A DNA stretch of 64,000 nt, taken from the NCBI GenBank assembly GCA_965112735.1, contig OZ218957.1:3410001-3474000 (forward strand). The letters are read 5' to 3'. A program made the translations under genes and the position numbers. Under the pieces are notes generated by a model. That model searched no databases and was not told the origin of the DNA. It saw only the letters and a list, made by a program, of their open reading frames with translations. This document shows positions 4,575-53,219 of the stretch, in pieces; the stretch's first letter is position 1, and each line of letters begins with the position of its first letter. This DNA is from Phaeosaccion multiseriatum (Eukaryota > Protista > Ochrophyta, other classes).

Positions 4575-4613
<39 letters not shown>

Positions 4614-5383
4614 GCGTGATGGATGAGGAGGGAGGACGTCGCGGTTAAAGGTACACGGCGCTTGAGAGAAGGAGGGGAGAGAGAGAGGGAGAAGCAGCAT
4701 GCAGGCTTTAACAAGCTATTCATCGCTAGAGGGAAGGAAGGGTGGGAGAGATAGGGACAAGCGGCATGTACGCAATCACCCCCGCAGCGAAGCTTGAGAG
4801 AGAGATGCACCGTGACCCCTCCTAGGACATGGGGGGGATTCTGTCTACATAACTCTGTGCAGAGAAGGCCTAGGGTGGATGTTTCCCGATCTGAATATGC
4901 GGCCCTTGCAGCCTTGTCTCCAGCCCAGAGTCACTTGCCCTCACAGCCCCCAGAACGAGCTCGCCCCCTTAGGTCGGATTGAATAGATGTCAAGGAGATG
5001 GCCGGTGGGGCAGACATCCCCTCCATCATCGCTCGCTCCCCACCCCCCCCTCCTTCTGCCCCTCCCTCTCTCCCCTCTCTTCCCCAACTAGGCCCAACAT
5101 CTTGTCCGCTCCGTCCTTCGCTCACCTGCAGCATGTAAAGCGTGCCATCCAGAGATCCCACCCCTGTCGCTCCCGTTCTATTCGGTAGGGAGCCATTGGT
5201 GCTCTCTCTCAAGTTGCTGTGCAGCAAAGCCGAGTAGACTGCTGCCCAGATGTCCTCTCCATCCCGTTTGCCAGCGTCGCGGGCAGCCTGGATAGCAGCG
5301 GCCACCCAATCCTCACGGACAGCAGGGATGCCACACGTGTCAGCTAAGGCGCGCTTTACACTCTGCACAGTCGTAATCGGCAT
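2195..5383 (-). CDS. RMI1: RecQ-mediated genome instability protein 1 (RMI1); exons ~5383-5126 and 4528-2195
   Basis: N-terminal DUF1767-like helix (EDWVAAAI..VYSALLHSNLRES) is spliced in frame to an OB-fold (LQVQSVLNAGEP..RQLKLCLTDGRQQVAAWEFKKI..GTKLLI..IRRGILLL..NTKLLGG). A C-terminal RMI1_C-like segment follows (YKVTVTIQDAT..AERIVGMPA). Confidence 0.85.
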
Positions 5384-5717
5384 CGGCTTTCAACCCCTCC
5401 GCATCCTTGTCCAAGAAATTTGCTCCCGCCCTTTGGGCCACCAAGCGATAAGAGAGTTCAGTTCAGTTCAAGGGAGAGTAAAGAGAGAGAGAGAGAGCAG
5501 AGAGCGAGAGAGAGAGAGAACGTGCGCCAGAGCGCGAGAGCGAGAGCGAGAGTGAGTGAGAGAGAGAGAGAGAGAGAGGAGGGAGAGAGCCGAGATTTGA
5601 AGTGGATTTATTGACTTAGACACATCAGTGTATCACCAACGTGCTTACTCAAAGAGAGGACAATTTCCCCCTTTTTTTTTCCTCTCCTCCTTGTCTCCGC
5701 TGCCGGGGCTTTTGCCG

Positions 5718-5875
5718 TCGACCCTGGACAAGGTTACAGTGTGCGCCGGCCATAAATCAGTAATCAGGCCGGCTGGCGCCAATAATCAGTAATCAGGCCC
5801 GGCTGGCGCCATAATCAGTAATCAGGCGGGCTGCGCCGGCCGAATCAGTAATCAGATAACCTTGTCCAGGGTCGA
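5718..5875. mobile_element. 158-bp MITE with 19-bp TIRs (TCGACCCTGGACAAGGTTA) and 6-bp TSD TTGCCG
   Basis: Perfect inverted repeats at 5718-5736 and 5857-5875. TTGCCG directly flanks both ends (5712-5717, 5876-5881). The interior has 4 x AATCAGTAATCAG alternating with GCCGGCTGGCGCC-like motifs. Confidence 0.9.
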
Positions 5876-6289
5876 TTGCCGGGGCGGCGTGCAGGCTCTT
5901 ACCGTTAAGAGTGTTGAGTGTGGCCTTCTCTCTGTGCATACCCATACACCTCTCCTGCGTGGACTTGAATTGAAGCTCAACAGCAGCTTCTTCCTCTCCC
6001 ATACTTATTCTGCTTCTCAGCACTTGCAGGTACGGCAGGGCTTAGATGGCACTCGACGGTGCCCACCCACGAAGCTTCCTGTAATTCCAAAACACATGGC
6101 TGCCCCCCCTCTCTGCCGAAAGACCCTTCACCATCCATGAAAGAGGCCTCTTTGCCAAGGCTCCTTCCCGACGTAACGCGCTCACAGCGCCCTCCTTCGC
6201 CATCCGCTGCCATGTACAGAGAGTCCAAGGTCCTTCGTCATATACTGCCATCCACCCCGACGATTTGCTCTCCTCCTTCTCCGCCCATG

Positions 6290-9200: not shown

Positions 9201-12200
9201 TGGACATGCTCACGCTGTCAGCGAAGGAGGCGGCCCCCACACGGCGAGTCACCTTACCTTTGCCGCTGATGGGTAGAAGACAAGTGGCGAGGAGGCAATC
9301 ATAGCGTTGTGCAGACGGAGGGAGGGGGAGAGGAGAGCGGAGGGGCAGGGGGAGGTCAGCGAAGGGCGGAGGAGGGAAGGGCCAAGAGAGCGCAACAGAA
9401 GAGAGCATATGGGGAGGAAAGACGACGAGCAGGCAATAAGCGAGGTATACTGGGGTGGACAGCGACCAACTGTACAGGTGAATTCCATGTTCCTTCCCGC
9501 ACGTCTCTTCTCACAGTTACAGACTCACTCACTGTCCTGACACTCCCTCACTCACTCAGTCACCGTCCGGCCACTTACTCTTGACGTCTGATGTTTCCCT
9601 CGATTCTCAACGCCGCGTTGGACTGTACAAATTCGTCAATGTCCACGTCTGCCGACGCCAAGGCCTGCGCAAAGCACGGACACACACACACGCACACACA
9701 CGCATACACACAAATAGGCATATGGGTCAGTCACTGTGCATGCACGGTGCGGTATGTGAGGCGGACTCATATTGAGCTTCATTGTCGGGGAGTGAGTGGG
9801 GTGGGTCCGTGACTGTATGACTGGGTGAGTGAGTGAGCGGTTGTTTTGATCACCCCAGACTTACCTTCGTTGCCCGGGGAAACAGAACGATGTTGTAGCT
9901 CCTCTCGGTCACGAGCCCCACCTCTTCCTCTGTCAACTTCTCGTACACGGAAACCGAGAAGTTGCGCTTCCCAATTGGACGGAGGCAGCAAAGATGATTC
10001 ATTCGAGTAGAGGTTCGAAAGATGCCATTGGGGCGCAGCAGGCATAGCGCAGCCGAGGAAGAATATTGTAGGGGATATTTTTCCGTGAGCGGCGGACGTG
10101 GAGGCGAAAGCATGGAGGCAGGAGAGGAGGAGAGAAAGGTTTGGGAAGAGCACGAATGAGAGCTTCCTCCTCGGTGGTGTCGAAGAGATGCTTTCTCACC
10201 TTGGCGAGGGCCAGAGCGAGGAGTCCACCAGCAGGGCCACCACCGGCGATGACCACCTGTATAGCATAATATGGCAGCTTTAGCTTTCTGAGTGCGAGGA
10301 AGGGATGCTACTGATCACAGATACACACACACACACACACACACAGTGAGAGAGAGACACGGGAGGAGAGACGAGAGAGAGAGAGACCGGGGGCGTCTTG
10401 AAAGAGGAGTCTACTGCAACCTAAACCTCTCCCTCACAGGCCAACACCTAAACTCCGCGGAAGACTCCACGACCACAGTTCACATACGCACCTTAATCCC
10501 TGTACCATCACAGGGCAATGCCCCAACAGGGGACGAAGATCCCTCCATAGTCTCCTCCGCCACCCTTGCCGCCGACCCCGCGCTGACGCCTCCTCTTGTT
10601 CTGCAGTACTTCCTCAACCGCAAATCAAGGCTCGGGGAGAGTCTCCTTTTGCCAATGTCTGGGTGCGTTTGTGACCGTCGGGAGGTCCCTGAGGGCAAGG
10701 CGTTGTTGAAGAAAGAAGAGCTTGTACGCTCAGCGGCGATAGAGCAGTATTGGACGCATTCAAGAGGAGGTTTTCCTCGGCACTTATATCACCACCGCAA
10801 GGCTTGGCCTGCTCTCTGACTGGCTGGTGGTGGTGGTGCGGAAGAGTGAGCAGAGATGCCGCGATTGGGCGTGGACAGTAAAGTACGCTGGGGTCCACGG
10901 AATGGTGACCGCTTTTTGGCTGCTGAGTGCACTTGTTCGCTGCTGGTGCCTGTACCGCCAATCATAAAGCACCTGCTGTTGCTTCTCCACTGCTGCTGCT
11001 GCTGCTGCTTCTCCTGCAACTCCTCCGTCTCGCATTCAATTCAATGGGGAGGCGTGCGTAAGGTTGAAGGAAAAAGAGAAATTTGTTGACTTAGTAGTCG
11101 GGAAGGAAATCACAGTTGTCGTGGTATCACCATACCCAAGGTGATTTCGTATTTCACATCGCTTTTGTGCCCCCTTCGGACACAGTCGTCAGCAGCTCCA
11201 ATCTCCACTCAGGGAGGTGCGAGGGAAGAGACGCCTGAAGAGCCGCCTTCCTTGTGAGTGGGTGAGTGAGTGAGTGAGTGAGTGAAGAGTCGCCTTCCTT
11301 CCCTCGCAAGATCGATGGATAGAGGCACGACTTGGATGCATGCCTCACCTCACAGCACGAGCAGCAGCAGCTGTGGAAGTTGGTTATACGAGACTGATGG
11401 CCCGACCTGCTCCAAGAGAAGGCGAGGCTCTCCTCTCTCTCCCCTCCTACCGCTCGTCCACCTAATGGCGGAAACATCGCACATAAAAAAAATAAAAAAT
11501 AGCAGTAACATTAAAAAAAAAAGGTTGAGGAGTTTGAAGGAAGGGGGGAGGCTGCCCATCAAGTGAGACATCGACACAGGCGGCCTCATTCTTACCCCGA
11601 TTGGCTCGCCTCCTTCTTCTCTACGCCAAGCTCCCGGCAGCGTGGGGGTTGCTTGAGGGGCTGTGTATCCACATTCTTCACAGTTGGCATGCGCGCACAT
11701 GCCCTACAGGGCCAAGGCAGGCCTGACAATCGCGAAGGCTTTCCAGCACAGCAGCGCTGATACTCCGGCGGCAAAGGCTGGTGGGAATGGAATGGGGGAA
11801 GGGAGACGAGGAGAGTTTTTGAGTTTGAGTTTGAGGACGGAGCAAGGGTCCGTGTGGAACGGACATTCCCTCTTTGTGAAAAGATTACTACAATTCCCTC
11901 TCATTGAAGGGGAGACTGTGAGACACACTTGCCTCTCTTCGCACAGAGAGCAAGCAAGCTGACCCCTGGCAGTCCAACGGTACACACCTTTGAAGAGTCG
12001 GAAGAAGACTCGCTCCTCCTTCTCGGAGGCCGCCAGAATGGAGGAGTATTTCATGTCAGCATCGTACAAGGACATCATGGCCGGCTGCGCACCCCAGGCA
12101 GGCATATGGGGAAGGGAGGGAGGGAGAGGGCAAGGAACGAGAGAGAGAGAGACGAAGGGAGGGAGGGAGGGAGGGAGTAGAAATGTTAAGAAGGTTCTTC

Positions 12201-37324: not shown

Positions 37325-37399
37325 TCGACCCTGGACAAGATTACGGTGTGCGCCGAGTAGTCAGGCCGGCTGGCGCCGGTCATAATCAATCAGTTATCA
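37325..37399. mobile_element. Truncated left end of the TCGACCCTGGACAAG MITE family, interrupted by the 8.36-kb transposon
   Basis: TCGACCCTGGACAAGATTACGGTGTGCGCC matches 5718-5747 with 2 mismatches. It is followed by GGCCGGCTGGCGCC and AATCAGTTATCA, and continues as TTATCAGGCC after 45755. Confidence 0.8.
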
Positions 37400-37430
37400 T
37401 CGACCCCTGACGTGCTATTATGCTATCTGC

Positions 37431-37560
37431 GATAGCATGCTATTGGGCGCCCCGGCGCCCAATAGCATGCTATTTGCACTCGGCGAATAGCAGATAGCAC
37501 GCCGGCTGGCGCCGGCGAATAGCAGATAGCACGCCCCGTCGCGCCGGCGATAGCAGACGC
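37431..37560. repeat. Left subterminal repeats of the transposon (ATAGCAGATAGCAC / GCCGGCTGGCGCCGGC) including a 20-bp-stem palindrome
   Basis: ATAGCATGCTATTGGGCGCC-CC-GGCGCCCAATAGCATGCTAT at 37432-37473, followed by ~31-bp repeat units. Confidence 0.9.
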
Positions 37561-37729
37561 CCTGCGACAGCCTTTCCACTCCTAGCTGCCTGCCTAATCA
37601 GCATACGTCGAGCGCAGAGAGTATGCGAGCCTTCAGTCTTATATTACCAATACAATGGTGGCTGGGCGAACCTTGGCGTTCCCCTCTCCCCCCATCTCCC
37701 TCTCTCGCGAGGCAGCCATCTCTCCTTCA

Positions 37730-40542
37730 CTAACCCAGGACGCACTTATGCAAGGCCGAGTTGTAAACGTCGGGCAAGGAACCGTTGCGCATCCCGGAGC
37801 TCAGGTACGCCCGAAAGAGGCGAGTTCTCTCTGCCTCATACTCTTCGCAGGTCAGACACGGCAGCCCACACGCGGCCAAGAAGCGGTCCACGGTCTCCTT
37901 CTTTGCCCCCGCCGCACTAGACAAAATCGCTACACCGTCGTCCCTTTCCCAGCTGTTGTCTTGCTCAACACCATAGAGCACTTTGCGCATGGGGCTGGTG
38001 TCTGCCACAGCCAATTTCGACATGAATAGAGCTGTTGCCGGACCGCAAGAATTCGAGCCGGCCTTCTGCTGTGGCACACCAACAAAGACCTGCCGGAATC
38101 GGAGGGCTGCCGTCCCAGGGGCTCTTTCGTCCTCCATGACCTTCTCCACATACACCTGCGTCGCTTGGAGCACTCGCTTCGAAGGGTGGTGACCGAGGCG
38201 CCCATTTCGGACCGTATCAAAGTGCAGAATGTACGCCATAGCACCCTCCCCGTCGTCACTAGCTGCAGAGGTAGGTAGAAGGACAGCGACAGTCGAGAAA
38301 TGGCCGCTGAAACTCGCAGGGAGGACGAGGAGCTCACACTTCGTCATTGTAAGACCAGACTCCCTGTAACCTTTCGGCAGGAACCCTTTCGGAGCCGTCG
38401 CCAACACGTTGGGCATGGGGGAGTTCTCCACAGCTGGGTTGAAAATGTGACCAAGAGACGCGCACGGGAGTAGTGCCCTGTTTCCGTTCACGGATACAGT
38501 GGTCATCATCGCGTCCAAAAAGAAGGAGGTGTACTCCCCCTTTTCCTTGTGCATGTCCTGCTCAGCGCCGAGGACAAGCAGCCTCGCCTTCATGTCCCCT
38601 GTCAGCTGCTCAGCTTCGGCCACTGATTGTGCCGCAGGCATGGCCCTGCTTTTCTTCTGGTGGGAAGAAGGGCTGCTGCCCCCCTCCTGCTCCTCCTCCT
38701 CCTCCTCCTCCTGCTCCTCCTCCTCCCCCCCCTCCTGCTCCTCCTCCTCCTCCTCCTCCTCCTCCTCCTCCTCCTCCTCATCATCATCACCACCACCATC
38801 ATCCTCCTCCTCCTCCTCCTCCTCCTGCTCCTCCTCCTCCTGCTTCCCCAACGCCGTCTTCAGTAGGAAGTGAGAGAGTGCAGCTTGCATGCTTTTCTGA
38901 CCGCTCGATGAGTGGGAGTCTCTGTGGCGCTTAACGCCAGACAAATGAGTCCACTGAGGCTTGTACTTGCCCTTCCCGGCGCTCTGACAAGCAGGCCTGG
39001 TGCACACAACAGATACCAGCATATCCAATGATGTTCTGGCGTGTCTGATGGAGAAGTTCGCTTTGGCCTCAAGCTGAATCAAAGCTGGCGTATGGATCTT
39101 CACGAAGCTTGCTGCATCACCGACCTTGCTTCCGCTGAGAGTTTGCATCTCCACATCAGGCATTTCCCGCAAAAGATAAAAGAACTTGGTTCCTTGCGCG
39201 TGGAGCCAGCTCTTCGCCTTCTTCGTCAGTGCCCCCTCTTGCCCCGCCTTCCCGCCTTTCGTCCCGCCGGCACTCTCTCCCTCACTATCACTGGTGGTCT
39301 CACTGACACGGGCAGCACCACCTCGATGACCTGCCTTCTTGGGTGGGGTATGGGTCGAAAAATCTGTGGCGCTGTCCAGAGATTGGGTAGGGAAAGACAG
39401 GCAAATTTGCACGTTCTCCTGCTGTCTCGCCCCTGATTTCGGGCGTAGCTCGCAGTACAGATCCAGTCTCCACCGTTTGTCGGGATCGATACGGCCCGGA
39501 GGGAAAGTGTAGAACGAGCGCACCTGTATTGGGTGTGTGTTGGAGAAAGAGACAGAGAGGGGCGGGGGGGGGGCGGGTTTAAGAAAGGGTTGCTGCCGTA
39601 GCAGACAATGCACAAACATCGAGAGGCAGTTGTACCCGACACGTACCACGCGGCGCAGGGAGACGTCGTCGCGGATTGTATCCAACCCTCTGCCACGTCT
39701 GAATGCCGTGGAGGCTCTGATCGTGATGTCGTTCTTCTTTTGTTCCGTCTGAAAGAGCAATTCGCTGGTCAAATGTCCACGGAAGGCCTTGAAGCTGGAG
39801 AATCGCTTGTCTTCATTAGCCAGCTGGAACGTGTAGGGCAAGGTCTCGAAGAGCTCGGTCGTGTTGCAGGACACCGATGTGCCGAGACTGAAATCAGCCT
39901 CGACGGGGTTGAGGCATCCTCTTGGAAATGTCCCCACATGCGCGAACATGAGAGGGGTAGGTTTTGCCTGTCCCATCCCTGCACTCAGGGGCAAGGCATA
40001 ATCGAAGTCTTGTGCCTCAGAAGACGATGCCAAGGTTGCCGTACTCTGGAGATAGGTGTCCTCAAGCCGCCCCCCCTCCTCCCACCCCAGCTCGTGAGAA
40101 GCGTGTTGTGAATGGCTGCTTCGGCGTACTTCCCTGTCGCTGGGACTTTGGTTCCGACGCATTTTCCTCGCGCCTGCTGGGAATCCTCTTTCGCTGGGAC
40201 TGCGGCCCCGTCTCCCTTTGCTTCGACCCTTTTCTCCTTCCCTCCTCCCTCCTCCTCCTCCGGATCTGGGTCGGCTCCGACTCCTGCTGGTACTTCTCCC
40301 TGCCCTCCTCCTCTCGGTGTCCTTCCCCCTACTCCGACTCCTGCTGGCATTTCTCCCTCGCTTCCTCCTCTCACTGTGCTTCTCCCTGCTCCAACTCCTG
40401 CTGGCACTCCTCCCTCTCCTCGCCCTCTCAGGGGCCTTCTCCCGGCTCCGACTCCTGCTGCCAACTGGACTTGGCGTGCCTCTCCTGCTGTTGTAGTAGT
40501 CGCCCCCCCCCCCCAACTCCTCCCTCCATCGCGGCCAGACAT
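37730..40542 (-). CDS. Transposon-borne Ulp1/SENP-like (C48) cysteine protease with RS-rich N-terminus, putative Zn finger and acidic tract
   Basis: LLVLPASFSGHFS (His), YILHFDT (Asp) and VPQQKAGSNSCG (Gln/Cys). Also CTRPAC..HRDSH and 4 x 19-aa RS repeats. Probable in-frame 123-bp intron at 39524-39646. The ATG at 40542 needs a 1-nt shift in the C12 run at 40503-40514. Confidence 0.8.
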
Positions 40543-40638
40543 GAAGGACTTTTGAACCAGTGGGGCCCAGCCATGGGCCCAGCCAGCTATAAGCCAATAA
40601 AGATTCTGCCGTTTCACATTTGGCCACAAACAAAGGCG

Positions 40639-43600
40639 ATGGGCGCCGCGGGCTCGTCCGCGACAGAAGAAGACCATGGGCGGGTGGCTGTGACGGAAGA
40701 CGCGGACAGCGGGCGTGTAGAGCTTACCCGGGACGTAAACGATGTCGACATTGTTCCCTTTGCGATCCAATTCCATCTTGATCGAGGGCACTTTACTCGG
40801 AGTCACTTCATGTATCAAACGGTGCATCGTTGGGTCATGAACAGCGGCCTTTGGTCCAGGCGTCAGACTGTGGCCGCGAGCAAGCAGCTCAATGGCTACG
40901 AGACGCTGCGACAGTTTAATGAGACCCAGCAGAACGTATTTGGTTCAGCATGCTCCATGCTCTCCTATGGGGCACCCCGCAGAAAGAAGGTTCGTGGCCC
41001 CAACGTCTCCAGGGACCAGGCCATGAAGGACTACTTCCGCAGGGCGAACACAGGCGGCTTTCATCCGAGAGCACTCATTAGGCGCAGGCCTGGCCTAATC
41101 AAGAGGTACGGTCTGCAAGTCGAAGACATTATCAACGTCGTCAATGTCTTCGCCCGCTTCTGTGCCGACCAAGCCTACACTCTTGGCGACAAAGGCAACG
41201 AGAAGATTGTGGTTCCCGTGACTGTCCAAATGGATGGCTTCGTCATTGCCAAGGGCCATCATACTGATACAACCAGCCAAACCAATTGGGGCAATGCACA
41301 TCAGTTTGGAAATACAACACTGGAGCAGGCGAAGGCAATACTGGAAAAGTCTGATGCTCAGGTGCGTGGCGTCCCCTCCTTCCCACTGATCTTTCGGGGC
41401 AGAATCACTGTTGATCCATCGTCAATCTTAATCACGCCTCCTCGCTCGCTCGCTCACGCTGCAGCCCCGCCTTTGCTTCGCCTCCTGTCAACCCTCCCTT
41501 ATCGCTACTCGTTCTGTTCCAGCTGCGAGACGAGGACGCACCTAAGCTGGGTTCCGAGATGATGGAAGTTATGATGATGGATCTGAAAGGGGCATACACG
41601 GGCTCCATCGGTTTTCAGCTTCACACCGCAGGGGGTGACTACAAAAGTGTTGCCGCGAGCGTGACCGAAATCATGAAGGCGCTGCGTGTTTGCATCCCTT
41701 GTCTCGAGCTTTTCTGGCAGCGGATTCTGACGGGGGAGAACCCCTCGTGGGTGGAGATGGGCGAGGCGTGTGATTGCCACCAAGCTTGTCCCACCGGAGG
41801 GGAGGGTCCTTGCGGTGAAAGTGAGTGCGTTTGCGCGACTCAGTTCTCCAGCAGAGTCTGCTCGAGGTGCAAGAGGAAAGGGCTCGTGTGCAAGAGTCTC
41901 CGACCATTGTGCATCTCAACAGACTGTAATGGCGCACAGCTTGCCTTCATTCGGAAAATGGCGGCAAGAACCCTCGGAGAGGACGACCCCCTGGGGTGGT
42001 ATGAGGCACTGCCTGACGGGGCTCACCTTGTAAAGTGTGTTCGTGCTACGACATTCAATTGGTGGGTCGTCTGCCAGGGCTGGCTAGTCGGACTGCGAAC
42101 TCTTCGCGCCAGATTCCACGATCTGGACCCGGCTCGAAGTGAAGCAGTACAAGCCAATGTTGGCCTTGACGCCATTGAAAACAAGGATCCTTTCTCAGTG
42201 GAGAGCGCAATCGCTGTTACGACGGCGTCTCTGCAGTTGGCTCTACTCTCAGAGGAGGAGCGGGAGAAGCGCCGTGCTCTCGTGGGGGTGACCGTGTGCC
42301 CGGAGCCGTGGGGTTTCTGGCATCAGAACATGGCCTCGCAGACTCAGAAGCCGACTGGTATGGGCTACCATCATGGCTCTGGCATGATCTTCAACGCCGA
42401 TCGTTCAGGCAGGCATCTGCGCATGCTCAAGGCCCATCATGTGCCTTGTACCACAGAGGTTGTTCTGCGAGACGACTGCTTCCAGAGTCTTGGGTCTCTC
42501 GTCGTGGTTGGCGACTACGTGTACATGTGTGACAGTGGAGCGAATCAGATTTGGGTGGTGCATGTGCTGGCCGCTCTTCCAGGAAACAGGGGACCCCGCG
42601 CGGCGGCGGAGGAGGGCGACGATGATGATGACGACGACCAGCAACCGGACGGGCATGTAGCAGCGCGTGGTCGGGGGAGACAGACTCAGCAACGGCATTT
42701 GAATTTGAAGGCAGTGCCCTTGGTCCGTCGGATCCAGGAGCGTTGCACTTCTGAGGAGAATGTCCTCGAGGAGAGAGAAGAGGAGGGCATCCGTTGCCCC
42801 GTTGCCATTGCGCTTGCCGTGTCCTCTGAGCGCGCGTTCGACCTCTTTGTCACCCAAGAGGAACCTGGCGGGGGGGGAGCACTACACCGGCTCTCATTTG
42901 ACGCTGGCAACCCTTTTGCACCTGTGAGCGAGAAGCTGTGTGACCTACCCAAGGGACCTGCGGGCCTCACAGCACTCTCGCATGACTGCGTTGCCTGCAT
43001 CGCCGACAGCTCGCTTTTTGTCTGGGAGGGCAATGTGGAACGTGCCGGAGGACCAGAGGGTGGCAGTGGCAATGACGGAGATACACTCATGGCTCTGACT
43101 GATGACGAGGAAGATGGTACTGTTGAGAAGCCAAGGCGCGCACACCTCACGTGCGTGAAGTCTCACGTGGGGACTCAGCCTTGTGGACTCACGTTGGCCC
43201 CACCCGGTGCATACGATGATGAAGATATGATCGTCATCCTCATGCTAGATGAAGGTTTGCATGCGCTTGTCAAGGTTCTCCTTCGTCGTGACAGTGGGGT
43301 GCTAAGCTGGAAGGGATCATCCGTGCTGATGGGCGGACAGGGAAACACAGAACCCGGAGAGAGCACTGCCAGCGGTACGGCATCGAAAGTACCTTTGTTC
43401 AGACCTACGTTCGGCTGCTTCGTGTACAACGCTTTCTTCTTGTCCGACACTGGAAACCAGTGCATTCGAATGATCTCGGACTGCTACGTCTACGCCCAGC
43501 ACCTCATCCCACTACAACGGATGTTGAGTGAGGCGTATCAGCTCCAGGGCGAAGACTTGGATGAGAATGGCAAAGACATGCAAAACAACGCACGCACGAT

Positions 43601-45376
43601 GGAGGAGAGCATTGCCAAGCTTCATGTGGTCGACTTGGCTCTCAGTCACATGGGGAAAGCGATATCAGCTGCCACAGGCAAATCCCTGGTCTCTCTCCAG
43701 GGCCCTGAAGGAATGCCATCACGCGAAGTTCGAGGTGCTATCAAGGCGAGCCTGCAGGCACTACCTCGGATGCTACATCGGATGCTTGCAGAGGTGAGAA
43801 GGGGTGTGCGTGTGTGTGCGTGAGTGCGTGAGTAAAAACGTCCGTGTCCGTGGGCGCGTGCGTTTGGAAATCAGCCTTGCCCTTTCGTCTCACGGCTTCG
43901 CTGTTCGCTCCTTGCTTGATGCTTCCTCGCTCATTTCCGTCAGCAGGGAGTGCCTCGCGGCATCGTGGAGAAGATGCAGATGAGGAGCGTTTTGACCCTC
44001 AATGTTGAGACTTTCTTCACGAAGCAAAGGGAAGGCCGCCAGGATGTTCCAGACGCTCTTGAGTATGCCCGAAGAAGGGGCCTTGTGATGCTTCAGGCTG
44101 CGAAGAAGGCCAACCCCAGCATGGGCTTTGCCTACTGCACAAGCAGCGTCAACAGCAGCGGTCGAAAGCTCAGGGCGGGATACCAGCTGGAGCAAAACGA
44201 GAGCAGATTGGTGGCTTCACCCGTGTTGAAGCGACCAAGGGTAGCGGAGAAGCTTGACGAAGGGCAACGCAAGCAGCGCAAGAAGGACACGCAGACGCTT
44301 CGCAATGCGGCGGCTCGTCTTAGGAAGGTTCCGCAGCAGCGTGTAACCAACAAGAGGAAGTACAATGTTGGAGCGGCCCCGCGTTCGGTGGCGTTTGCTC
44401 CCAACTCTGCGCAAAGCAACGACCCGAGTGGATACCTGTCGCGCTTGCATGAGAGCTCGGGAGCGAGGAAGCGCGGACAGAAAGGACGGAAGACCGGTGA
44501 ATCCGTCCGAACTCGCATTCTCTACAGGGCAAATGACGTTGTGATAGTCAGGGCAGACAAGGGGTCGGAGGAGAGCTTTTTCTTGCACAGCTTCGCGTCG
44601 ATCTTCGGAAGGAGGTGATCGTCTCGAAGAAGGGACGAGGCTCCAAGCAGAAGGTGGTTCCGGCAAAGCCTGGTGTTTCATACTTTCACGTCGCTGAACA
44701 GGACTCTACCGACGAGTCCCAGGACGGGGATGGGGCTGCAGCAGTCGTCTACGAAGTCGACGGCGGGAAAGAGGCTTCTGTGTCTTGTGCTGCCATTTAT
44801 GGCGCATTGCCCCGCTACCACGAAGCCATGTACATCGAAGGCTCACATGCAGCTTCAGGAGGGGTGTGCGCGCAGAGAAGGCTTCGGAGGTTTGCCATCA
44901 CGGAGGAGCAGCACGAGGAGTGCAAGCAGATTGTCAACAGAGAGGCGGAGGGCCAAGAGGTGGCCAAGGCGATGGGATACGCCCCCCCCGACCCAAGCGT
45001 GCACATGGGAGAGGACATGTCTGAGGACGATAGCAGTGACGGCGAGCAGGAGGCGCTGAACCTGAGAACACTGCGCAAGAACATCATCGGAAAGGTGGTG
45101 GGGGCGATGTCCTCACGTGGGCGCACGGTAAACAAGCCCGAGAGTTATGGGGCTTTGTCTCGTGGCACGGCAAAAGCAGCAGACTCTAGCTCCAGCGAAG
45201 CCACTGCATGTCTAGTCTGTCAGAAAGATGTTGACCACGACAAAATGTTGCTATGTGACGGCTGCGATGAGGAGTTTCACACGTACTGCCTGACCCCTCC
45301 CCTCTCTACGCTTCCTGAAGGGGACTGGTATTGTGACGGAGTGAATGCTGCCTGCCCTAGTGGTAAAAGTGACTGA
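40639..45376 (+). CDS. Putative DDE transposase (DxxH type) with Cys-rich insert, NHL-like beta-propeller insertion and C-terminal PHD finger; exons 40639-41361, 41523-43793, ~43947-45376 with a 1-nt frameshift near 44577-44581
   Basis: Candidate catalytic residues: VTVQMDGF (~41233), CISTDC (~41922), LPDGAHLVKCVR (~42015) and LTLNVETFFTKQR (~44007). NHL-like blades: PTGMGY..IFNAD, VYMCDSGANQIWVV, FFLSDTGNQCIRMI. PHD: CLVC..MLLCDGCDEEFHTYCLTPPL..GDWYC. Both introns are phase 0 GT..AG. Confidence 0.78.
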
Positions 45377-45624
45377 TTGGCGAGCACAATGTCGATCGGG
45401 CCGTCCGCCGGCTGAGCTAGCGGAGAGCCAGTCAATCACAGGGCGGAGAGGTAGGGGTGCACGGGCAGCAGGTCAGCCAGGCCAGGCAGAGGGTGGACCT
45501 TGATATACTCCCTTAGGCATACTATACAAGAACTGACGCGAATTAATGGCAATGAAACACGTGTGAGTTGCTTCCTCCGCTCCTAGCCCCCCGCACGCGC
45601 ACCCTCCCACCCCCGACCCCGGGG

Positions 45625-45724
45625 GGGCGAATAGCACAAAACGCCGGCTGGCGCCGGCGATAGCACATAGCACGCCGGCTGGCGCCGGCAATAGCAGATA
45701 GCACGCCGGCTGGCGCCGGCGATA
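45625..45724. repeat. Right subterminal repeats of the transposon, 3 x ~31-bp unit
   Basis: Three copies of CGCCGGCTGGCGCCGGC separated by (G/A)ATAGCA(G/C)ATAGCA. Confidence 0.9.
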
Positions 45725-46109
45725 GCAGATAGCATAATAGCACGTCAGGGGTCGATTATCAGGCCTCCCCCCCCCTTGGAGAAACCTATTCCCCCTTCGC
45801 GGTCCGGCGGCAGAAAAAACAGAAAAAAATATGAAACCCCTTTTCCTTTTTCCTCCCTCCCCTTCGGATGAAGTAAAAACTAGCAAAGGTGAAAAAAACT
45901 GAGTCCGCATGCCGGAAGGCGAGGGGACGCGTTCCAACAGTAGCACCAAGGGGGTGGGGAGTAGAGCAAGGGAGGCGTGTGAAAAGGAGGGAGAGGAGCG
46001 AGAAAGAGCATAGGGAAGATTGCACGTGGAAGATTGGGTGGAGAAGGCGGGGGAGGGACACAAAACAACCGACGACTGCGGGGTGAAGGAGAGCGACACG
46101 GGTGGAGAT

Positions 46110-49100
46110 ATGCATAACTCAATGGCGCCCCTTTGCAATGTGGACCGGGAGACTCTCTCTGGCGCCATATTTATTTACTGTGACATTGTCATCGCCTTCA
46201 GCTACTACGTCATCCCTCTCATCCTGGGTGAGGGACTAGTGCCGTCATGGCAGATGCTTCCACGCGTCCATAATGCGATGTTCTGATCATTCATGCCGAA
46301 CCCCCCCCCCCCACTCCTCCCTCCTGCGATGGGCTCTAAGACTTGCCTCACCCCCTCCGATTCCTAAGGACTGTGCATCGTCTCGCCTCGTCCCCACTGT
46401 CCGCAGCTCTACTGGTCAGGTTTAGCGAGGTGGATTTGAGCCTGCTCACGTCCACGTCCTCCTCTGTGGACGGCACAAACAGGATGCTTGTGCGCATCTA
46501 CGTGCTCGTGGTGCTCATTCTCCTCTTCATCGGTGAGTCTCACTCACTTTCCCTCCCTCCCTCCCTCCCTTCCTCACCCCATCAATCTATCGGACCAGCC
46601 GAATGTACATCCCTCCCCCGCTCACTCTCTCTCCCTCCCTCCCTCCCTCCCTCCCTCCTCCCTCCCTCCCTCCCTCCCTCCCTCCCTCCCTCCTCCCCCC
46701 TCCCTCCCTCCCTCCCTCCCTCCCTCCCTCCCTCCCTCCCTCCCTCCCTCCCTCCCTCCCTCCCTCCCTCCCTCCCTCCCTCCCTCCCTCCCTCCCTCCC
46801 TCCCTCCCTCCCTCCCTCCCTCCCTCCCTCCCTCCCTCCCTCCCTCCCTCCCTCCCTCCCTCCCTCCCTCCCTCCCTCCCTCCCTCCCTCCCTCCCCTCT
46901 GTATATGATAAGGCATGTGTGGCACTACCCACCTCTGTCACGGGCTGGCTGGCTACGCGAACGTGTCTGTGGGCCTTATGATCTTCATGGAGGTGTGCAC
47001 CGCTCTGGTCAGCCTCACCACCGCCGTCTACCTGGCTTGGTTCTTCCCTCAGATTCTGCCTTTCATCCGCTCCAAACAGCTGGGCAAGCTTCTGCAGTGG
47101 CAAGATGACCTTTACAAAGGAAGCATTCATCTCATCAGCACGCACAGCTTCGACGCCGATGCTCCGGTCTTCCTCACCGTCAATCCTTGCGCACCCAAGT
47201 TCGGTTTCTCCGAGAAAAAGCGTCTAATGGTACGTGAATTGGTGATACGGTACGTGTACTACTTGCCTTGGCATGGGCAGGTAAAGACACATGTGGGCAC
47301 TGATAGCAGTGACTTCAGCAGCAGCAGCAATGCTCCTGACACGGCACTGGCGAAAGAGCTTCTCACTACGCTTGGCAATGGATGGACCACCAGCGGCCCC
47401 TGTCACCTCTACCCGCCCCCCCCCCTAACCTCACCTCACACACACATACGTAAGTCTTAGGTTGATTCCTGTACGTCCCAAACCCCCTACCCTCCTCTAT
47501 CAACACCTGTATCACCAACAGGGCGAGAGCTTTTTGGACTTTGTCCATCCCGAAGATGTGAGGCTGGTACACTCGGAGCTAAAAAGAATCAAAGCCAGCT
47601 CGATAGGTAAGGTTCTAGCACAGTGCTTAAGGTTAAGTAAGGGTGTAAGGAGAAGGGAAGCACCACTTGTCTATTCTTCTCACTCTCGAGCACACACACA
47701 CACACTCGCCCCCCCGCAGCTCAATCCCGCGACAGCCGAGCGAGTCGTTTGAAGGGACAGAAACCTCTAAAGGTGCAAGACATTGACACGCTGAACCCCG
47801 ACCAGCACTCGGTGGAGAGCATCGAGTTCCGATTGCAGCCCCAACCGACGTGTACTGTTCCAGTGGAGAGCATTATAAGCTGCAGGGAAGAGATGGACTC
47901 GAGCTGGACTTTCCTCATCATCACACGCGACATCTCGCTAAGGAAGGCCAAGTGCGTAAGGCTCTGTGTACGGCCTTGGGGTGCTGGGGGTCGTTGCTCT
48001 TCTGAGTGCTTGCGGCAGGGATTGATGATGGCATTTAACGGTGTCGACTTGCTTTGCTCCTCACAATCGTACACGTAAAATGTAAAATGGTATTGTGCCA
48101 ACTGCTCAGGGAGACCCTGGAGGAGGAGCGGCGAGAGAGCGACATGCGCACGCGCCTCAAATACATCTCCTCCATCGCTCACGACCTCAAGACGGTGAGG
48201 CCCACAAGCTTGCTTATCTTACGTAATGCCCGTATTTACTTACGTAAGCCTTGGCCTTGGGCCGAGCCGGAGGGTGGGTGAAGCTGCTATACACGTGCCC
48301 CATCCATGTAATCACAGCTGGCATATTCTTCTGACCCTTCCCTTTACATGCCTTGCTCTGTGCAGCCCTTGGCAGTGTTCCAAATGAGCCTGGAGCTCGT
48401 CAGCAAGAAGAACAGCACCGACTCTGAGGACTTCAGCATCCTTAGGGATGCACAGGTCAGAGGGCAGAGCCACTGGAGGGAGGGAGGGATGGAGGGAGGG
48501 TGTATTTTATTTACGTAATATGGAGGGAAGGAGGGAGGGACGGGACGGGGAGAAATTGTATTGTACACGCCCGTCAGAGAGAGAGATTGTGTATGTGTAT
48601 TTTTGTGTGTGTGTGTTTTTGTGCATGTGTGAGTATGTGTCCTTCTTATGTGTATGTGAGTGCCTGTGTGTGTGCATGTATGTGTATAGTCACGTCCTCT
48701 CCTCCATATTCCCTCTTCCTCAAACTCCCCCCACCGCCCCCTACCCGTGTTGATTGTCTGTGATCGTCGCCAACCAATCCAAGCTCTCCCTGGAGCTGAT
48801 GAAGGTCACTGTCCATCAGGCAGTGGACATCGGCCGCTCCACCTCTCAGGGCATCGTCATCAAGCCCCAGGTCCTGACACCCACCCTCTGTCCTGACACC
48901 CATCCACCCTCTGTCCTGACACCCACCCACTGTCCTGACATCCACCCTCTGTCCTGACACCCACTCTCTGTCCTGACACCCAACCATCCCCCCCTGTCCT
49001 GATACCCCCCAGTACGATTCCGTGTCCGTTTCAAGTACCCTCCTAAAGTGCCAGCATGTCATCAGGGGATACAGCAAATCCGTTCCCGTCAGGTACGCTG

Positions 49101-50415
49101 CGTAGTGAAGGAAGCAACGGGCCCAAGCTCGGCTTCTCACACCCACCCACTCGGAACTTTTCTCTCTTCTCTCCCTCTTAGTCTAGTCTCTCTCTTTTCT
49201 CACTCACTCTCTTTACTTCTTTCTCTCTCTCTCTCTCTCTCTCCCTCTCATCCTTCTCCCTCTCTTCCAGCGCGGGGCCTGATAGCCACCACAATGGGAA
49301 TCCCCTCCACTCCGCCACGCCCTATTCACTTCACTCGCTGTCTGGAAGTGACTTCCCTGACTCACCCCATCCACTGCCATCCCATCCCACCACACCCCTC
49401 CTCCTCCTCCTCCCCTCCTCTCACAGATTCGTGCTCCAAAAGGGCCTGGCCGGCTGCCGGCTCATCACAGATGGCGAGTGGCTGTGGCAGATGATGATTA
49501 ACTTGTGCACCAACGCCTGCAAGTACACCTCCAAAGGGTACATCTCCCTCGAAATGGCCATGGTCGAGAAGGTCGGCAAGGATGATGGCAGTCAGACGAG
49601 CCACGGCGGCGGCAGCGGCGACAGGGGGGCCGGGGACAGGGACAGGGACAGGGGGGCAAGAGGCGATGGGAGAGGCGATGGGAGAGGCGATGGGGGGAGG
49701 GGCAAGGCGGAGAAGCACTTGATGGTGCTCGTAGCGGACACAGGGATCGGAGTGCCGGAGGGGCAAAGACACAAGCTATTCAGGCCCTTCTCACAGTTGC
49801 AGGAGTATCAGAACCAGGGCACGGGGCTGGGGCTTTATGGCATCAAGGAGAAGGTGTCCGTGCTTGGGGGTCAGTGCGGAGTGGAACCCAATTGGCCCAG
49901 GGTAAGGTCAAATCAATTTAGTTGGCGGGAAAAAGCTTTCATATGCGATGTGCTATGCGCGTTGCTCTGTCGACCGCCTCAAACTCTCCTCCCCCTTCCT
50001 CCTCCCTCCCTCCCTCCGTTCCTCCCTCCTTCCCTCCCTCCCTCCCTCCCTCCCTCCCTCCCTCCCTCCCTCCCTCCCTCCCTCCCTCCCTCCCTCCCTC
50101 CCTCCCTCCCTCCCTCCCTCCCTCCCTCCCTCCCTCCCTCCCTCCCTCCCTCCCTCCCTCCCTCCCTCCCTCCCTCCCTCCCTCCCTCCCTCCCTCCCTC
50201 CCTCCCTCCCTCCCTCCCTCCCTCCCTCCCTCCCTCCCTCCCTCCCCAGGGCTCAATCTTCTTCTTTACACTGCCCTATGTGGGGGACAATACAGGCATG
50301 TCAGAGGCGGTAGATGTGCAGGAGCCCTCGCCGTCTGCGGTGGAGGAGCTTCCCCTCCAGGACCTCCATTTGTCAAGGCTGCTGGACTTGCAGAGCGAAC
50401 GTTGCGCGAGAAATC

Positions 50416-50480
<65 letters not shown>

Positions 50481-50697
50481 CGAGCAGAGGAGGCAGCAGC
50501 CGAGGCAGTAGGGGACAACAGCAGGTCAAGGAGAACGAGCACCGGCGGGAGGGACAGCGCTGGAGACATTTCAAGCCATCGCACTGCCATTGCCAAGAAG
50601 GGGAGGGACAGCGCTGGAGACATTGCAAGCCATCGCACTGCCATTGCCGGGCTCGTCAGCGGCACTCCTCCGTTGGCAGACCATCAGGAAGGGGACG

Positions 50698-50739
<42 letters not shown>

Positions 50740-53219
50740 AGAAGGGCCGAGGCGGGGGGGCGGGCAGGGTCCGCACCGCTAGTGTAGGGTGCCGGCGGGC
50801 GGTGGAGGGCCACAACATTGACTCGTCGGGTAGCTCCACCGCGGCCTCAATCGCTAAGAGCTTGGGAGATGTGGGGCCGACGTTTCGAGCGCGTGCTGCG
50901 TCCACCTTTCGAAGGAACAGAGCTTCCGTGGTACCGGTCCCCACGGAAGAGTCGCCACTGCGGACTACCGCTACAGCAACTCCTGCTACCACTGCTGCTT
51001 CTGGGACTGCACACAACAACAGCATCAACAAGAACAGCAAGAACAACAACAGCAACAACCACAACAACAACAAGAAGAACACCAGTGTGGACTACAGCGG
51101 CGAGTGCTGCGACACGTTCATCTCCTTTGCCGCTACTTCCCTCCCAAGTGGGGCTGCGTGTGCCACCTCCACCCGCACTCTCATTCCCATGCCGCCGTCG
51201 GGGAGTATCGACCCAGACATAGTCGAGGCGGGACTGGCGACGGACCCTCCTCCTGTATCACCACCACGCAAGGGAAGCGTTCTCATCATTGATGACACCA
51301 TGTGCGTTCGTGTGTATTTATTTTGTGTTTGTGTGTACTCAAGCTCAGCGAAAGGTCACCCCCTTACATGACCCTCCTCTCTGCACCCACCCATTGACAT
51401 ACTACACCCCCCGCCTGTAACGTGCCTGCGTGGTGTCAGGACTGTGCGAACCCTTTTCAGTCGAGCGGCGATGAAGGAAGAGTACGAGGTCTGCAGTGCA
51501 AACAACGGTGAGTGTGTGCGTGCGTGTGTGAGTGAGTGAGTGAGTGAGTGAGTGAGTGATTGAATGTGCGTGCATACGTGCGTGCGTGCGTGAGTGAGTG
51601 AGTGCGTGAGTGAGTGAGTGAGTGAGTGATTGAATGTGCGTGCATACGTGCGTGCGTGCGGTGATGTTGCGAGTACACGTCCAATCGTGACTCGGCCACC
51701 CCTGTGTATGTCCTGACACCCCCCACCCCCGCGTATGTCCTGACACCCCCCACCCTCCTGTATGTCCTGACACCCCCCACCCGCCTGTGTGTCCTGACCC
51801 CGCCCACCCCTGATCACTCACTACAGGCGACGAGGGCTTGCAGCTGATGAAGGAGCGCGTGTTCTCTTTGGTCATGTGCGACCTCCAAATGCCCATCATG
51901 GACGGGGCCGAGTGCACATCCCGCCTCAGAGACTTCGAGAGGACGAGCGGGAGGAAGGAGAGGCAGATCATTCTCTCCATGTCCACCTCTTGCGATACCA
52001 TGGCTATGAATGCTTGTGTACGCTGCGGAAGTGAGTGAGCTGGTGCACTAGAGATTGGAGCTTGCGTGTTTGTTCCATCAGCCGAGCTGCTTCTCTTCTT
52101 GCTTGATTGCTTTGTTGCTTGGTTGCTTGGTTGCTTGGTTGCTTGCATGTGCTCACCCTCTCCCTCACTTGTCCCTTTTTGTGCCCCTTCCGTGCTTGTC
52201 CTCTTTTGCTTCTTTCGCTCGTCCTTACGGCAGTGGACGGCTTTGCGCCTAAACCACTCAAGTTTCAAGTTTTCGCGAAGGTGAGGCAGGCGAGGACCAC
52301 AACTGAAACTGGTAACGGCCCTCAGGTCGTGCTTACCCATGTGACTATCACCGTATGTTTAACCGTGTGCCTAACCGTATGTTTAACCGTGTGCCTAACC
52401 GTGTGTTTAACCGTGTGCCTAACCGTGTGCCTACAACCATGTGCAACGTGTATTCAAGCGTGTGCCTAACCGTGTGCCTAACCGTGTACTACCTGGCCGT
52501 GTGTCTAACCGTGTTTTTAATCGTATGCCTAACCGTGTGTTTAACCGTGTGCCTAACCGTGTGTTTAATCGTGTGCCTAACCGTACGTTCAATCGTGTGC
52601 CTAACCGTGTGTTTAACCGTGTGCTTAACCGTGTGTTTAACCGTGTGCTTAACCGTGTGTTTAACCGTGTGCCTAGCCGTGTGTTTAACCATGTGCCTAA
52701 CCGTGTGCTTAACCGTGTGTTTAACCGTGTGCTTAACCGTGTGTTTAAACGTGTGCCTAACCGTTTGTTTAACCATGTGCCTAACCGTGTGCTTATCCGT
52801 GTGTTTCTCCTTCTGGGTGCTGTGTCGTTTCATCTCCTCATCTCTCTCCGTAGCTGCTGGATGCGTACTCACAACGCGCGGAGGACGACGCCATTTGCAA
52901 CCACTCAGTTTCAGAGGCAAAAGAAAGTAGCCCTCAGCAGCAGTTGGTGATACAGCAGCACCAGCAGCAGTTGGTGATACAGCAGCAGCAGCAGCAGCAG
53001 GAGAAGGAGGAGACAGGGGCTGCGGCTGCTCCCTCTCCGCGCTCCGTCCGCTGGGTCGAAGTCAACACAATGAGCATGCAGCACGATGAAAGCAACGGTG
53101 AGGCGGCCGCACTGCAGGCAGAGGGGGAGCAGGCTGGGGATCATTGGCACCATCTTAGGTTCGGAGAGGTGAATGCGCGGGCACTGGCGGACGGGAGCAC
53201 TTTTGTCGTATGGAAGTGA
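46110..53219 (+). CDS. Ethylene-receptor-like hybrid sensor histidine kinase (ETR1-type TM domain, PAS-like, HisKA, HATPase_c, receiver); many exons
   Basis: TM domain: CDIVIAFSYYVIPLIL, LLFIG|MCGTTHL, CTALVSLTTAVYL..FPQIL. PAS-like: FLDFVHPED. HisKA: SIAHDLKT|PL. HATPase: INLCTNACKYT..VADTGIGV..LFRPFSQ..GTGLGL. Receiver: VLIIDD, VMCDLQMPIMDG, DGFAPKP. Confidence 0.9.
48871..49012 (+). repeat. ~20-bp minisatellite (GTCCTGACACCCACCCTCT-like) filling an entire intron; related array at ~51705-51800
   Basis: Seven GTCCTGA(C/T)A units lie between the exon end (IKPQ) and the next exon (YDSVSV). Confidence 0.85.
52350..52805. repeat. 12-bp tandem repeat (AACCGTGTGCCT / AACCGTGTGTTT), ~35-38 units, intronic
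   Basis: Direct reading. It gives the LTVC/NRVP periodic translations in the ORF track. Confidence 0.95.

Follow-up and report, generated by a model that had tools for sequence, protein, structure and literature searches.

A probable P-element-like DNA transposon of Phaeosaccion multiseriatum with a predicted NHL propeller nested in its DDE transposase and a C-terminal PHD finger

Background

The insertion domains of DDE transposases, as known from Tn5, Hermes, RAG1 and the P element, are small and mostly helical, and their roles concern DNA hairpins, target capture and the binding of cofactors. The PHD finger of RAG2 is a reader of H3K4me3, Transib and RAG leave target duplications of 5 bp, Kolobok elements make TTAA duplications, and introns are usual in eukaryotic DNA transposons, the P element included. 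Here we describe a complete transposon of 8,356 bp (37400-45755) within 64,000 nucleotides of the ochrophyte Phaeosaccion multiseriatum (GenBank assembly GCA_965112735.1, contig OZ218957.1, positions 3,410,001 to 3,474,000 of the forward strand), the whole of which is called the window below and is numbered from its first letter. The element holds a transposase gene (40639-45376, plus strand) and a divergent second gene; a first-pass annotation by a model had dealt with the former and made no mention of the transposon around it. We propose, with a probability of roughly 0.8, that a young, autonomous and nearly intact DNA transposon of the cut-and-paste type occupies 37400-45755, and that its transposase has a P-element-like DDE core with a Cys cluster, a propeller and a C-terminal tail added to it.

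In the transposases of the P element and THAP9 a [C/D](2)H motif stands directly after strand beta-5 and opens an insertion domain, the end of which lies immediately ahead of the catalytic glutamate (PMC8230255). THAP is the DNA-binding domain of the P superfamily, and P and Galileo generate target-site duplications of 7-8 bp (PMC4168063). The Dada elements described by Kojima and Jurka in 2013 generate 6-7-bp duplications, measure 4.7-11 kb, contain introns, encode zinc-finger motifs and occur in protists and animals; they are without terminal inverted repeats, insert in tRNA or snRNA genes, and have a D-D-E spacing of 68 and 176 aa in Dada-U6_DR (PMC3706591). As to C-terminal modules, the C-terminal domain of piggyBac is described as binding transposon-end DNA, not histones (PMC5861402). 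In the open-access literature on transposase domain architecture we found no description of an NHL-bearing transposase.

The ends of the element

The two ends are built from the following features.

37394-37399, left target-site duplication TTATCA, the same hexamer standing directly after the right end
37400-37430 (plus), left terminal inverted repeat TCGACCCCTGACGTGCTATTATGCTATCTGC, 31 bp, or 32 bp counting an ambiguous A at 37399
37481-37557, left subterminal array, a 32-bp unit repeated 2.4 times and carrying GCCGGCTGGCGCCGGC (left subterminal region 37432-37557)
45626-45734, right subterminal array, a 31-bp unit repeated 3.5 times and carrying GCCGGCTGGCGCCGGC three times, in the orientation of the left array
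45725-45755 (minus), right terminal inverted repeat, 32 bp to 45756 counting the ambiguous base
45756-45761, right target-site duplication TTATCA

The terminal repeats were found by a blastn-short comparison of the two flanks, a general inverted-repeat scan being dominated by low-complexity repeats. Their arms are 100% identical (blastn E 2.9e-12), and the window contains no match beyond these two, where 0 would be expected. If TCGA is taken as the terminus at each end (37400 and 45755), TTATCA flanks the element on both sides. The terminal sequence TCGRCCCCKGAC is common to this element, to a related element on L001 (a 10,965-bp metagenome contig bearing the protein P0001) and to a miniature inverted-repeat transposable element (MITE) elsewhere in the window, while the near-palindromic 16-mer GCCGGCTGGCGCCGGC is confined to the ends of the element (five matches in the window, 0 expected). 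The subterminal arrays are direct rather than inverted at the two ends, both here and in L001, and each unit has a GC-rich palindromic core. Just inside the left repeat there is also a 42-bp near-perfect palindrome (37432-37473; AATAGCATGCTATT GGGCGCC CCGGCGCCC AATAGCATGCTATT), with no counterpart at the right end.

The transposase gene and its motifs

The gene and the residues discussed below are laid out as follows.

40639-41361 (plus), exon 1, 241 aa: N-terminal region and first RNase H strands with the first catalytic aspartate (D1); ends in ...KSDAQ with the donor CAG/GTGCGT
41233-41235 (plus), D1, in VQMDG (D199 of exon 1)
41362-41522 (plus), intron 1, 161 nt, GTGCGT...CAG, with a pyrimidine tract before the acceptor
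41523-43793 (plus), exon 2, 757 aa, ending in ...RMLAE with the donor GAG/GTGAGA
41691-41891 (plus), cluster of nine Cys and one His (exon-2 residues 57-123)
41922-41924 (plus), second catalytic aspartate, D2 (D134 of exon 2)
42015-42035 (plus), D165xxH168xxK171 (PDGAH) of exon 2
about 42282-43481 (plus), predicted NHL propeller (exon-2 residues ~254-653), with acidic low-complexity loops; further long helices come after it
43794-43943 (plus), intron 2, GTGAGA...tcagCAG, with an NAGNAG acceptor at 43943/43946
43944-44588 (plus), exon 3 up to the frameshift, 215 aa: catalytic glutamate, C-terminal helices of the core and start of a conserved C-terminal domain (ILYRANDVVIVRADKGSEESFFL)
44007-44009 (plus), catalytic glutamate (E), in LNVETFFTKQR (E22 of exon 3)
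44589-44590 (plus), 1-nt frameshift from frame 3 to frame 2, within the conserved C-terminal domain; the frame-3 stop is at 44616-44618
44591-45376 (plus), remainder in frame 2, 261 aa and a stop (45374-45376): rest of the C-terminal domain, acidic linker and PHD finger (45209-45337)

The gene consists of four collinear open pieces with two GT-AG introns and one frameshift, and lies in a window of 58% GC with introns of ~150 nt and coding repeats of the poly-E, poly-D and SLPP kinds. Its product measures ~1,222 aa up to the in-frame stop and 1,474 aa when read through the frameshift (241, 757 and 215 aa preceding the break), in close agreement with the ~1,220 and ~1,470 aa of the first-pass annotation. 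The parts follow one another in the order D, nine-Cys cluster, D, DxxHxxK, ~400 aa of NHL blades, E and PHD finger. The motifs that had been pointed out from the sequence (VQMDG, the Cys cluster, the second D, PDGAH and the E of LNVETFF) are all present, and the D, D, DxxHxxK and E motifs, like the zinc-ligand residues, are kept in the window, each on a conserved column of the family described below. The exons and pieces were searched and folded separately. Pfam searches of each exon, even at E <= 10, returned the PHD finger only; exon 2 had no match in a word-index protein search or in a phmmer search of the PDB, and exon 1 could be aligned with the family core by hhalign at 97.4% probability (E 1.5e-11).

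The change of frame falls within a run of residues that is uninterrupted in L001 ('ELFWLGQLKQSVLRE') and split in the window, where 'ESFFL' is read in one frame and 'QLRVDLRKE' in the next; the intron that L001 itself possesses in this region lies 15 codons beyond the matching point. Because L001 has the equivalent residues without interruption, we attribute the break in the window to a frameshift or to an error of sequencing and not to an intron. A micro-intron bridging it was considered and rejected, since the sole candidate would remove residues that are conserved in L001 and no more than 2 nt separate the two frames. The residues on either side of the break are conserved in both frames, and all the other exons are open. 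Judged by this comparison of sequences the frameshift is genuine relative to the homologues, a sequencing error being possible; as assembled, the copy would yield a shortened enzyme in which the core and the propeller are retained, the frameshift preceding the remainder of the C-terminal domain and the PHD finger.

A widespread, unnamed protein family

An exhaustive phmmer search with exon 2 recovered 104 relatives, 35 of them at E <= 1e-10 and the best, P0001, at 1.2e-89 across the whole exon. The 104 proteins, none of which has a name, derive from metagenomes and a small number of assemblies; the family is thus widespread yet unnamed, with about 100 cluster representatives. In the family alignments the catalytic columns are conserved at 95% (D1), 96% (D2) and 97% (E), those of the D(2)H motif at 88% and 94% and that of its K at 96%. 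The catalytic E is invariant among 28 aligned sequences, and the nine Cys positions between D1 and D2 show little or no variation.

The proposal that the pieces of the window form one chain had been made from the sequence alone, and the relatives bear it out. The same motif order is found within single ORFs (open reading frames) of 1,064-1,475 aa in intron-less relatives, unbroken ORFs span the parts in P0002, P0003, P0006, P0018 and P0035, and the GT-AG junctions of the window restore the frame exactly where the homology resumes. In particular, P0002 and P0003 have the DxxH, the propeller, the E and the PHD finger within one unbroken ORF; the pieces are therefore not separate genes, and the one-chain reading is independent of the splice model of the window.

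Other relatives in the alignments, P0011 and P0045 among them, carry extra modules, namely SAP (two members) and PB1 (one), and P0011 has a weakly matching Tudor/Agenet-like insert within the Cys cluster (E ~0.1). These SAP, PB1 and possible Tudor/Agenet modules suggest that the recruitment of DNA- or chromatin-binding modules is recurrent in the family. P0035 is an AT-rich (38% GC), intron-less, animal-like relative of 1,475 aa with an N-terminal C2HC-type zinc-finger-like motif. Three contigs, drawn from two NCBI assemblies and an ENA metagenome (L003, L004 and L005), encode it in identical form and represent the same locus, and no inverted repeats were found around it on them; a word-index search with P0035 gave one unnamed relative as its sole match.

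Predicted fold of the core and the propeller

We modelled residues 120-1100 of P0006, the closest full-length relative, with AlphaFold2 from an alignment of 102 rows, and obtained a mean predicted local distance difference test (pLDDT) of 87.9 and a predicted template-modelling score (pTM) of 0.89. In this model D1 lies in a long strand (97-110) and D2 at the end of another (281-291), ahead of which the Cys cluster forms a helical module; then come a helix and a short strand (308-311), with the DxxH directly after it, helices over ~85 residues (313-398), 25 strands (404-729), long helices over ~110 residues (730-838) and the E in a helix (841-854). The core is accordingly modelled as an RNase H-fold DDE domain with its acidic residues placed on beta-1, on or after beta-4 and on alpha-4, the cluster of nine Cys and one His, which is of zinc type, being placed between helix alpha-1 and strand beta-4. 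Such a fold draws on three exons, with D1 in exon 1, D2 in exon 2 and E in exon 3, which speaks against separate genes. In the window, D165xxH168 follows the strand equivalent to 308-311 of the model, and the E stands ~610 aa further on.

The strands between the DxxH and the E are predicted to form a six-bladed NHL propeller nested in the helical insertion domain. A family profile searched against the PDB matched Pizza7H (4.8e-30), SOQ1 (1.8e-22), NHLRC2 (1.3e-20) and TRIM71 (5e-14), and the Pfam NHL family matches six of 45 relatives (best 9.6e-10). A Foldseek search with the complete model points in the same direction, its leading match being Pizza6 (E 6e-12, target template-modelling score (TM) 0.83-0.84), with TRIM71 at 0.78 and TRIM2/3, LIN-41, PknD and Thin also among the matches. 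Exon 2 of the window aligns strand by strand to every blade, with two acidic low-complexity loops inserted, so that the NHL-like blades which the first-pass annotation had placed between DxxH and E, now exon-2 residues ~254-653, cover all the propeller strands of the modelled relative. Both folds that had been anticipated, the RNase H fold and the propeller, thus appear in the model of P0006, and the pTM of 0.89 suggests that the propeller is packed rigidly against the core.

As Foldseek with the whole model returned propellers only, the N-terminal core was also modelled alone (pLDDT 77.7). Its sole matches at E <= 0.001 were the P-element structures 6p5a_A (E 1.5e-5) and 6pe2_A (E 4.1e-5), other DDE enzymes (TnsB, Transib, ISCth4, BbRAGL, RAG1 and Hermes) standing at E >= 0.6; for Hermes (2bw3) the value was 1.9, and for HzTransib, BbRAGL and RAG1 it was 0.7-1.2. 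Furthermore, PF21787 (TNP-like_RNaseH_N) is the only recurrent Pfam family among the cores, with matches in seven of 35 (best 3.5e-5). Together with the position of D(2)H after beta-5 these matches lend modest support to a DDE transposase of the P-element/THAP9 kind, as had been suggested from the motifs. No homology to RAG was found, and none had been claimed earlier. On the Cys cluster, the profile of the N-terminal core gave a weak Zn2Cys6-like match to Pho7 in the PDB (E 0.17).

The C-terminal domain and the PHD finger

After the core, most full-length relatives have a conserved beta-rich domain with the pattern 'YRaGDvVvVK...FFLAQL...VRWF...I.G...F.I'. The first-pass annotation had seen a possible BAH/Tudor-like strand here; the stretch does prove to be a conserved C-terminal domain of the family, but neither Pfam nor the PDB yielded a match to any named fold. 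The PHD finger that follows it in the window was recovered as PF00628 (E 4.1e-12; score 46.4 bits, cut-off 24). It had been called canonical, and seven of its ligands are indeed canonically spaced, with the last Cys pair departing from the usual pattern as set out below; no downstream exon was found that would complete the last CxxC. The finger is restricted to a subclade comprising the window, L001, P0002 and P0003, and the PHD exon of L001 is homologous to that of the window (E 6e-12).

The closest solved PHD fingers are those of CHD4 (PHD2), KDM5A/B/Lid (PHD1), BAZ2A/B, ATXR5, PHF12, KAT6A, DPF, PHF21A, UHRF1 and AIRE. PHD fingers of the CHD4/KDM5/BAZ2/AIRE group mostly read unmodified H3K4 or the H3 N-terminus. 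The finger of the window is without the Trp two residues ahead of the zinc-binding His (DEEFH), the residue used by readers of H3K4me3. The finger resembles readers of unmodified H3K4 rather than the H3K4me3 type of RAG2, and the transposase may read chromatin by means of it.

Related elements and a MITE in the window

The transposase of L001 is split into the same pieces as that of the window. Its exon 1 is homologous to exon 1 of the window (E 2e-16), intron 2 stands at the identical codon boundary in both (just before 'GV...') and intron 1 within one codon, and the points at which the ORFs of P0005, P0007 and P0013 end imply an intron 2 at that position too. L001 also has the terminal architecture of an element: a perfect 23-bp inverted repeat (87-109 and 10791-10813), a terminus, TCGGCCCCGGAC, that matches that of the window, TCGACCCCTGAC, at 10 of 12 positions, and subterminal arrays of 33-bp units with a palindromic core at both ends (117-287 and 10568-10784). 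Further relatives, from the same metagenome samples, are decayed. L006 has one frameshift, and L007, L008 and L009 represent one gene in three assemblies, with at least three frameshifts in L008 and a shift near residue 630 that recurs in L007-L009; these four come from the JGI samples 3300045993 and 3300045747 and from Logan runs, with a GC content of 0.55-0.57, near that of the window. Decayed, frameshifted relatives of this kind point to a transposon family rather than to one conserved host gene. A scan of metagenome contigs with exon 2 found no close copy.

Within the window itself, two further features bear on the mobility of the element.

5718-5875 (5712-5881 with the duplications), MITE-like non-autonomous element, 158 bp
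37325-37393 (plus), half of a second MITE copy, 75.6% identical over 82 nt to 5715-5796 (E 1.7e-12), with the MITE terminus found in it, adjoining the left end of the 8.4-kb element

The complete MITE has 19-bp perfect inverted repeats (TCGACCCTGGACAAGGTTA) beginning with TCGACCC, as does the 8.4-kb element, and a 6-bp duplication, TTGCCG, on both sides. Its internal 29-bp tandem array carries GGCCGGCTGGCGCC, the same GC-rich motif as in the larger element. Given the half MITE at the left end, and given that the target site when rejoined (AATCAG-TTATCA-GGCC) matches the MITE repeat unit, we propose that the 8.4-kb element inserted into a MITE, within one of its repeat units. Matches of the MITE terminus in metagenome contigs, three in all, were set aside as chance occurrences within unrelated coding DNA.

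The second gene and neighbouring features

The other gene of the element is the following.

37730-40633 (minus), ORF2, up to 967 aa (an upper bound), RS-rich at its N-terminus; in its middle, (CCT)53 at 38683-38841 encodes poly-E/D

The C-terminal domain of ORF2 has a homologue at 1399-2130 (minus) of L001 (tblastn 3.8e-8, blastp 1e-10), with GH[FY]S, LH.D[TS] and VP.Q....SCGPA conserved between the two; an ORF of 712 aa adjacent in L001 was also considered as the counterpart and rejected, the homology lying in the next ORF, at 1399-2130. The order H..D..Q..C of these residues, which is that of the C48/Ulp1 peptidases, recalls such enzymes and might point to a peptidase-like domain. ORF2 had no match in Pfam, PDB or word-index searches. 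Between the two divergent genes lies a 57-bp Pro/Ser-rich tandem repeat with a 28-bp sub-period (40274-40460), in a region open on both strands.

Outside the element, a long (CCTCCCTC)n-like repeat at 46580-46930 is open in several frames (SLPP/GREG). The window also contains an RMI1-like ORF (2195-4810, minus; PF08585, E 5.9e-17) and an ORF with a GHKL ATPase domain (49431-51371, plus; PF02518, E 4.9e-12).

Alternative explanations

Several observations weigh against our interpretation of the element as a nearly intact relative of the P element. No THAP domain was detected in exon 1 of the window (Pfam) or in any of the 45 long relatives, and no Pfam match to the GTP-binding insertion-domain models of the P element was obtained, the helices of this region flanking the propeller (model 313-398 and 730-838). 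The target duplication is 6 bp at two insertions in the window, unlike the 7-8 bp of the P superfamily, and L001 shows no clean target duplication. The core model has a global TM of 0.33 to the P element (6p5a), with an rmsd (root-mean-square deviation) of 11 A over 405 columns. No transposase was retrieved when the profile of the N-terminal core was searched against the sequences of the PDB, and the full model represents a relative that shares 33% identity across exon 2 rather than the spliced protein of the window itself. The eighth Cys of the PHD finger is atypical, WYC-x6-C and then a stop (45320-45376) instead of the usual WYC-x2-C, and the single full copy visible carries a frameshift. 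Those points that concern the core, the lack of a THAP domain and the duplication would suit a separate superfamily, either undescribed or of the [C/D]xxH type (Dada, Kolobok), whose core merely resembles that of the P element as the sole solved relative: no structure of Dada or Kolobok is available as a competing match in Foldseek, the 6-bp duplication is inside the 6-7 bp of Dada (PMC3706591) and outside the 7-8 bp of P (PMC4168063), and Dada elements are likewise 4.7-11 kb long, intron-bearing and present in protists (PMC3706591). However, PF21787, the only family recurring among the cores, was built from P/THAP9. Dada itself, moreover, is without inverted repeats and targets tRNA or snRNA genes, whereas no tRNA or Rfam gene was found in the whole 64-kb window and the insertions in it are not in RNA genes; its D-D-E spacing of 68 and 176 aa compares with ~185 and 552 aa here, and a D2-E distance of 176 aa is too short for a propeller of ~320 aa. 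Against Kolobok stand the duplications of the window, TTATCA and TTGCCG, which are not TTAA. We regard a separate superfamily as the less likely but a serious alternative. The most far-reaching reading, about as likely, we put forward only tentatively: that the family is a hitherto undescribed, superfamily-level lineage of eukaryotic cut-and-paste transposons, sister to P/THAP9 and extending from protists to animal-like sequences, in which a propeller and a histone reader on a single chain would take the part that RAG2 plays for RAG1 and couple DNA cleavage or integration to the state of the chromatin, the RAG-type architecture having then arisen a second time by convergence.

The remaining alternatives concern the status of this particular locus. 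That it is an immobile host gene domesticated from a transposase, as THAP9 is, might be supposed from the presence of one copy in 64 kb, from the failure to find a close copy in the metagenome scan, from the conservation of the catalytic residues and from intron positions shared with a relative only ~30% identical. Yet perfect 32-bp inverted repeats, subterminal arrays and a 6-bp duplication bracket the gene, the terminus and repeat motif of the element recur in a MITE of this window, L001 repeats the terminal architecture in a different context, there are frameshifted copies among the relatives, and introns are normal in eukaryotic DNA transposons; we consider domestication very improbable. 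A dead copy, whose frameshift is real, which no longer moves autonomously and whose architecture is relevant at the level of the family only, deserves much more weight, and falls somewhat short of an even chance in our estimation. The frame does change (44588-44591) within a conserved domain, the last Cys pair of the PHD finger is atypical, and L006 and L007-L009 are frameshifted as well, with one shift reproduced in three assemblies. On the other hand, the other exons are open, the catalytic and zinc-ligand residues are all kept, both frames are conserved at the break and even the truncated product would retain the core and the propeller; and, as the inverted repeats are 100% identical, any damage must be very recent, or else an assembly error. 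Improbable in the extreme is the notion that the four pieces are separate genes and their single chain an artefact of joining ORFs. Prokaryote-style gene callers do split the L001 locus into four genes, but the GT-AG junctions restore the frame where the homology continues, intron-less relatives encode the parts in single ORFs of 1,064-1,475 aa, and the RNase H fold draws D1, D2 and E from exons 1, 2 and 3. We thus retain the reading of 37400-45755 as a young cut-and-paste transposon with a P-like core.

Proposed mechanism and significance

In light of this architecture, we posit that the transposase would bind the ~31-bp subterminal repeats and the TCGRCCCCKGAC termini and pair the two ends, and that its DDE site would cut and rejoin DNA with a stagger of 6 bp at the target. 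The propeller might serve as a platform for the binding of DNA, nucleosomes or a partner, at the place where the P element uses GTP. The PHD finger and the C-terminal domain could tether the complex to histone H3 tails, thereby biasing the site of integration or the timing of action.

We regard the element as a P-like cut-and-paste transposon with an unprecedented domain architecture. A complete six-bladed propeller at the position of the insertion domain would be a new solution among transposases and raises the question of its role during transposition. In combining a propeller and a PHD finger in one chain, the family would offer a natural counterpart to the RAG1 and RAG2 pair, and a system in which to test whether the joining of a propeller and a reader is a means by which DNA breakage has repeatedly been linked to chromatin. 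With its ends, duplication length and MITEs now defined, the family can be annotated in genomes, and it is a candidate for a chromatin-guided transposon tool.

Comparison with known systems

The affinities of the element can be summarized by setting it beside the systems that it most resembles. To hAT transposons it shows little likeness: no hAT Pfam match was found among the window pieces or the 45 relatives, Hermes was not among the significant Foldseek matches, and the duplication is 6 bp rather than the 8 bp of hAT. With Dada, as compared by published description, it shares a DDE core with DxxH, a duplication within the 6-7-bp range, a large intron-bearing element and zinc-finger motifs; unlike Dada it has inverted repeats and a longer spacing of catalytic residues, and the zinc fingers of Dada are located elsewhere. 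The resemblance to the P element and THAP9 is closer, encompassing a core modelled with the RNase H fold of DDE enzymes, a D(2)H after beta-5, a large insertion before the E and an 'ExxF...R' helix, and, for the P element, also inverted repeats of ~31 bp, subterminal repeats and an intron-split gene. Set against these are a predicted NHL propeller within the insertion domain, at the site of GTP binding in the P element, an inserted nine-Cys cluster with a D1-D2 spacing of ~185 aa in place of 73, a conserved C-terminal domain (followed by a PHD finger in the subclade of the window) and a second gene.

The propeller itself, with six four-stranded blades and NHL signatures in the model, is like those of TRIM71/LIN-41, Brat, TRIM2/3, NHLRC2, SOQ1, PknD and the designed Pizza proteins, and unlike them in being nested in a transposase catalytic domain and in its long acidic low-complexity loop inserts. 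A reader-type module at the C-terminus of a DDE enzyme has parallels in the chromodomains of chromovirus integrases and in the PHD-like Cys-rich C-terminal domain of piggyBac. Finally, like the RAG1-RAG2 pair, the element unites a DDE enzyme, a six-bladed beta-propeller and a C-terminal PHD finger, with the second gene of the unit on the opposite strand. This parallel would be a likeness of parts only, with a propeller that is of NHL rather than Kelch type and within the catalytic chain rather than in a partner subunit, and with a target duplication of 6 bp in place of the 5 bp of Transib and RAG.

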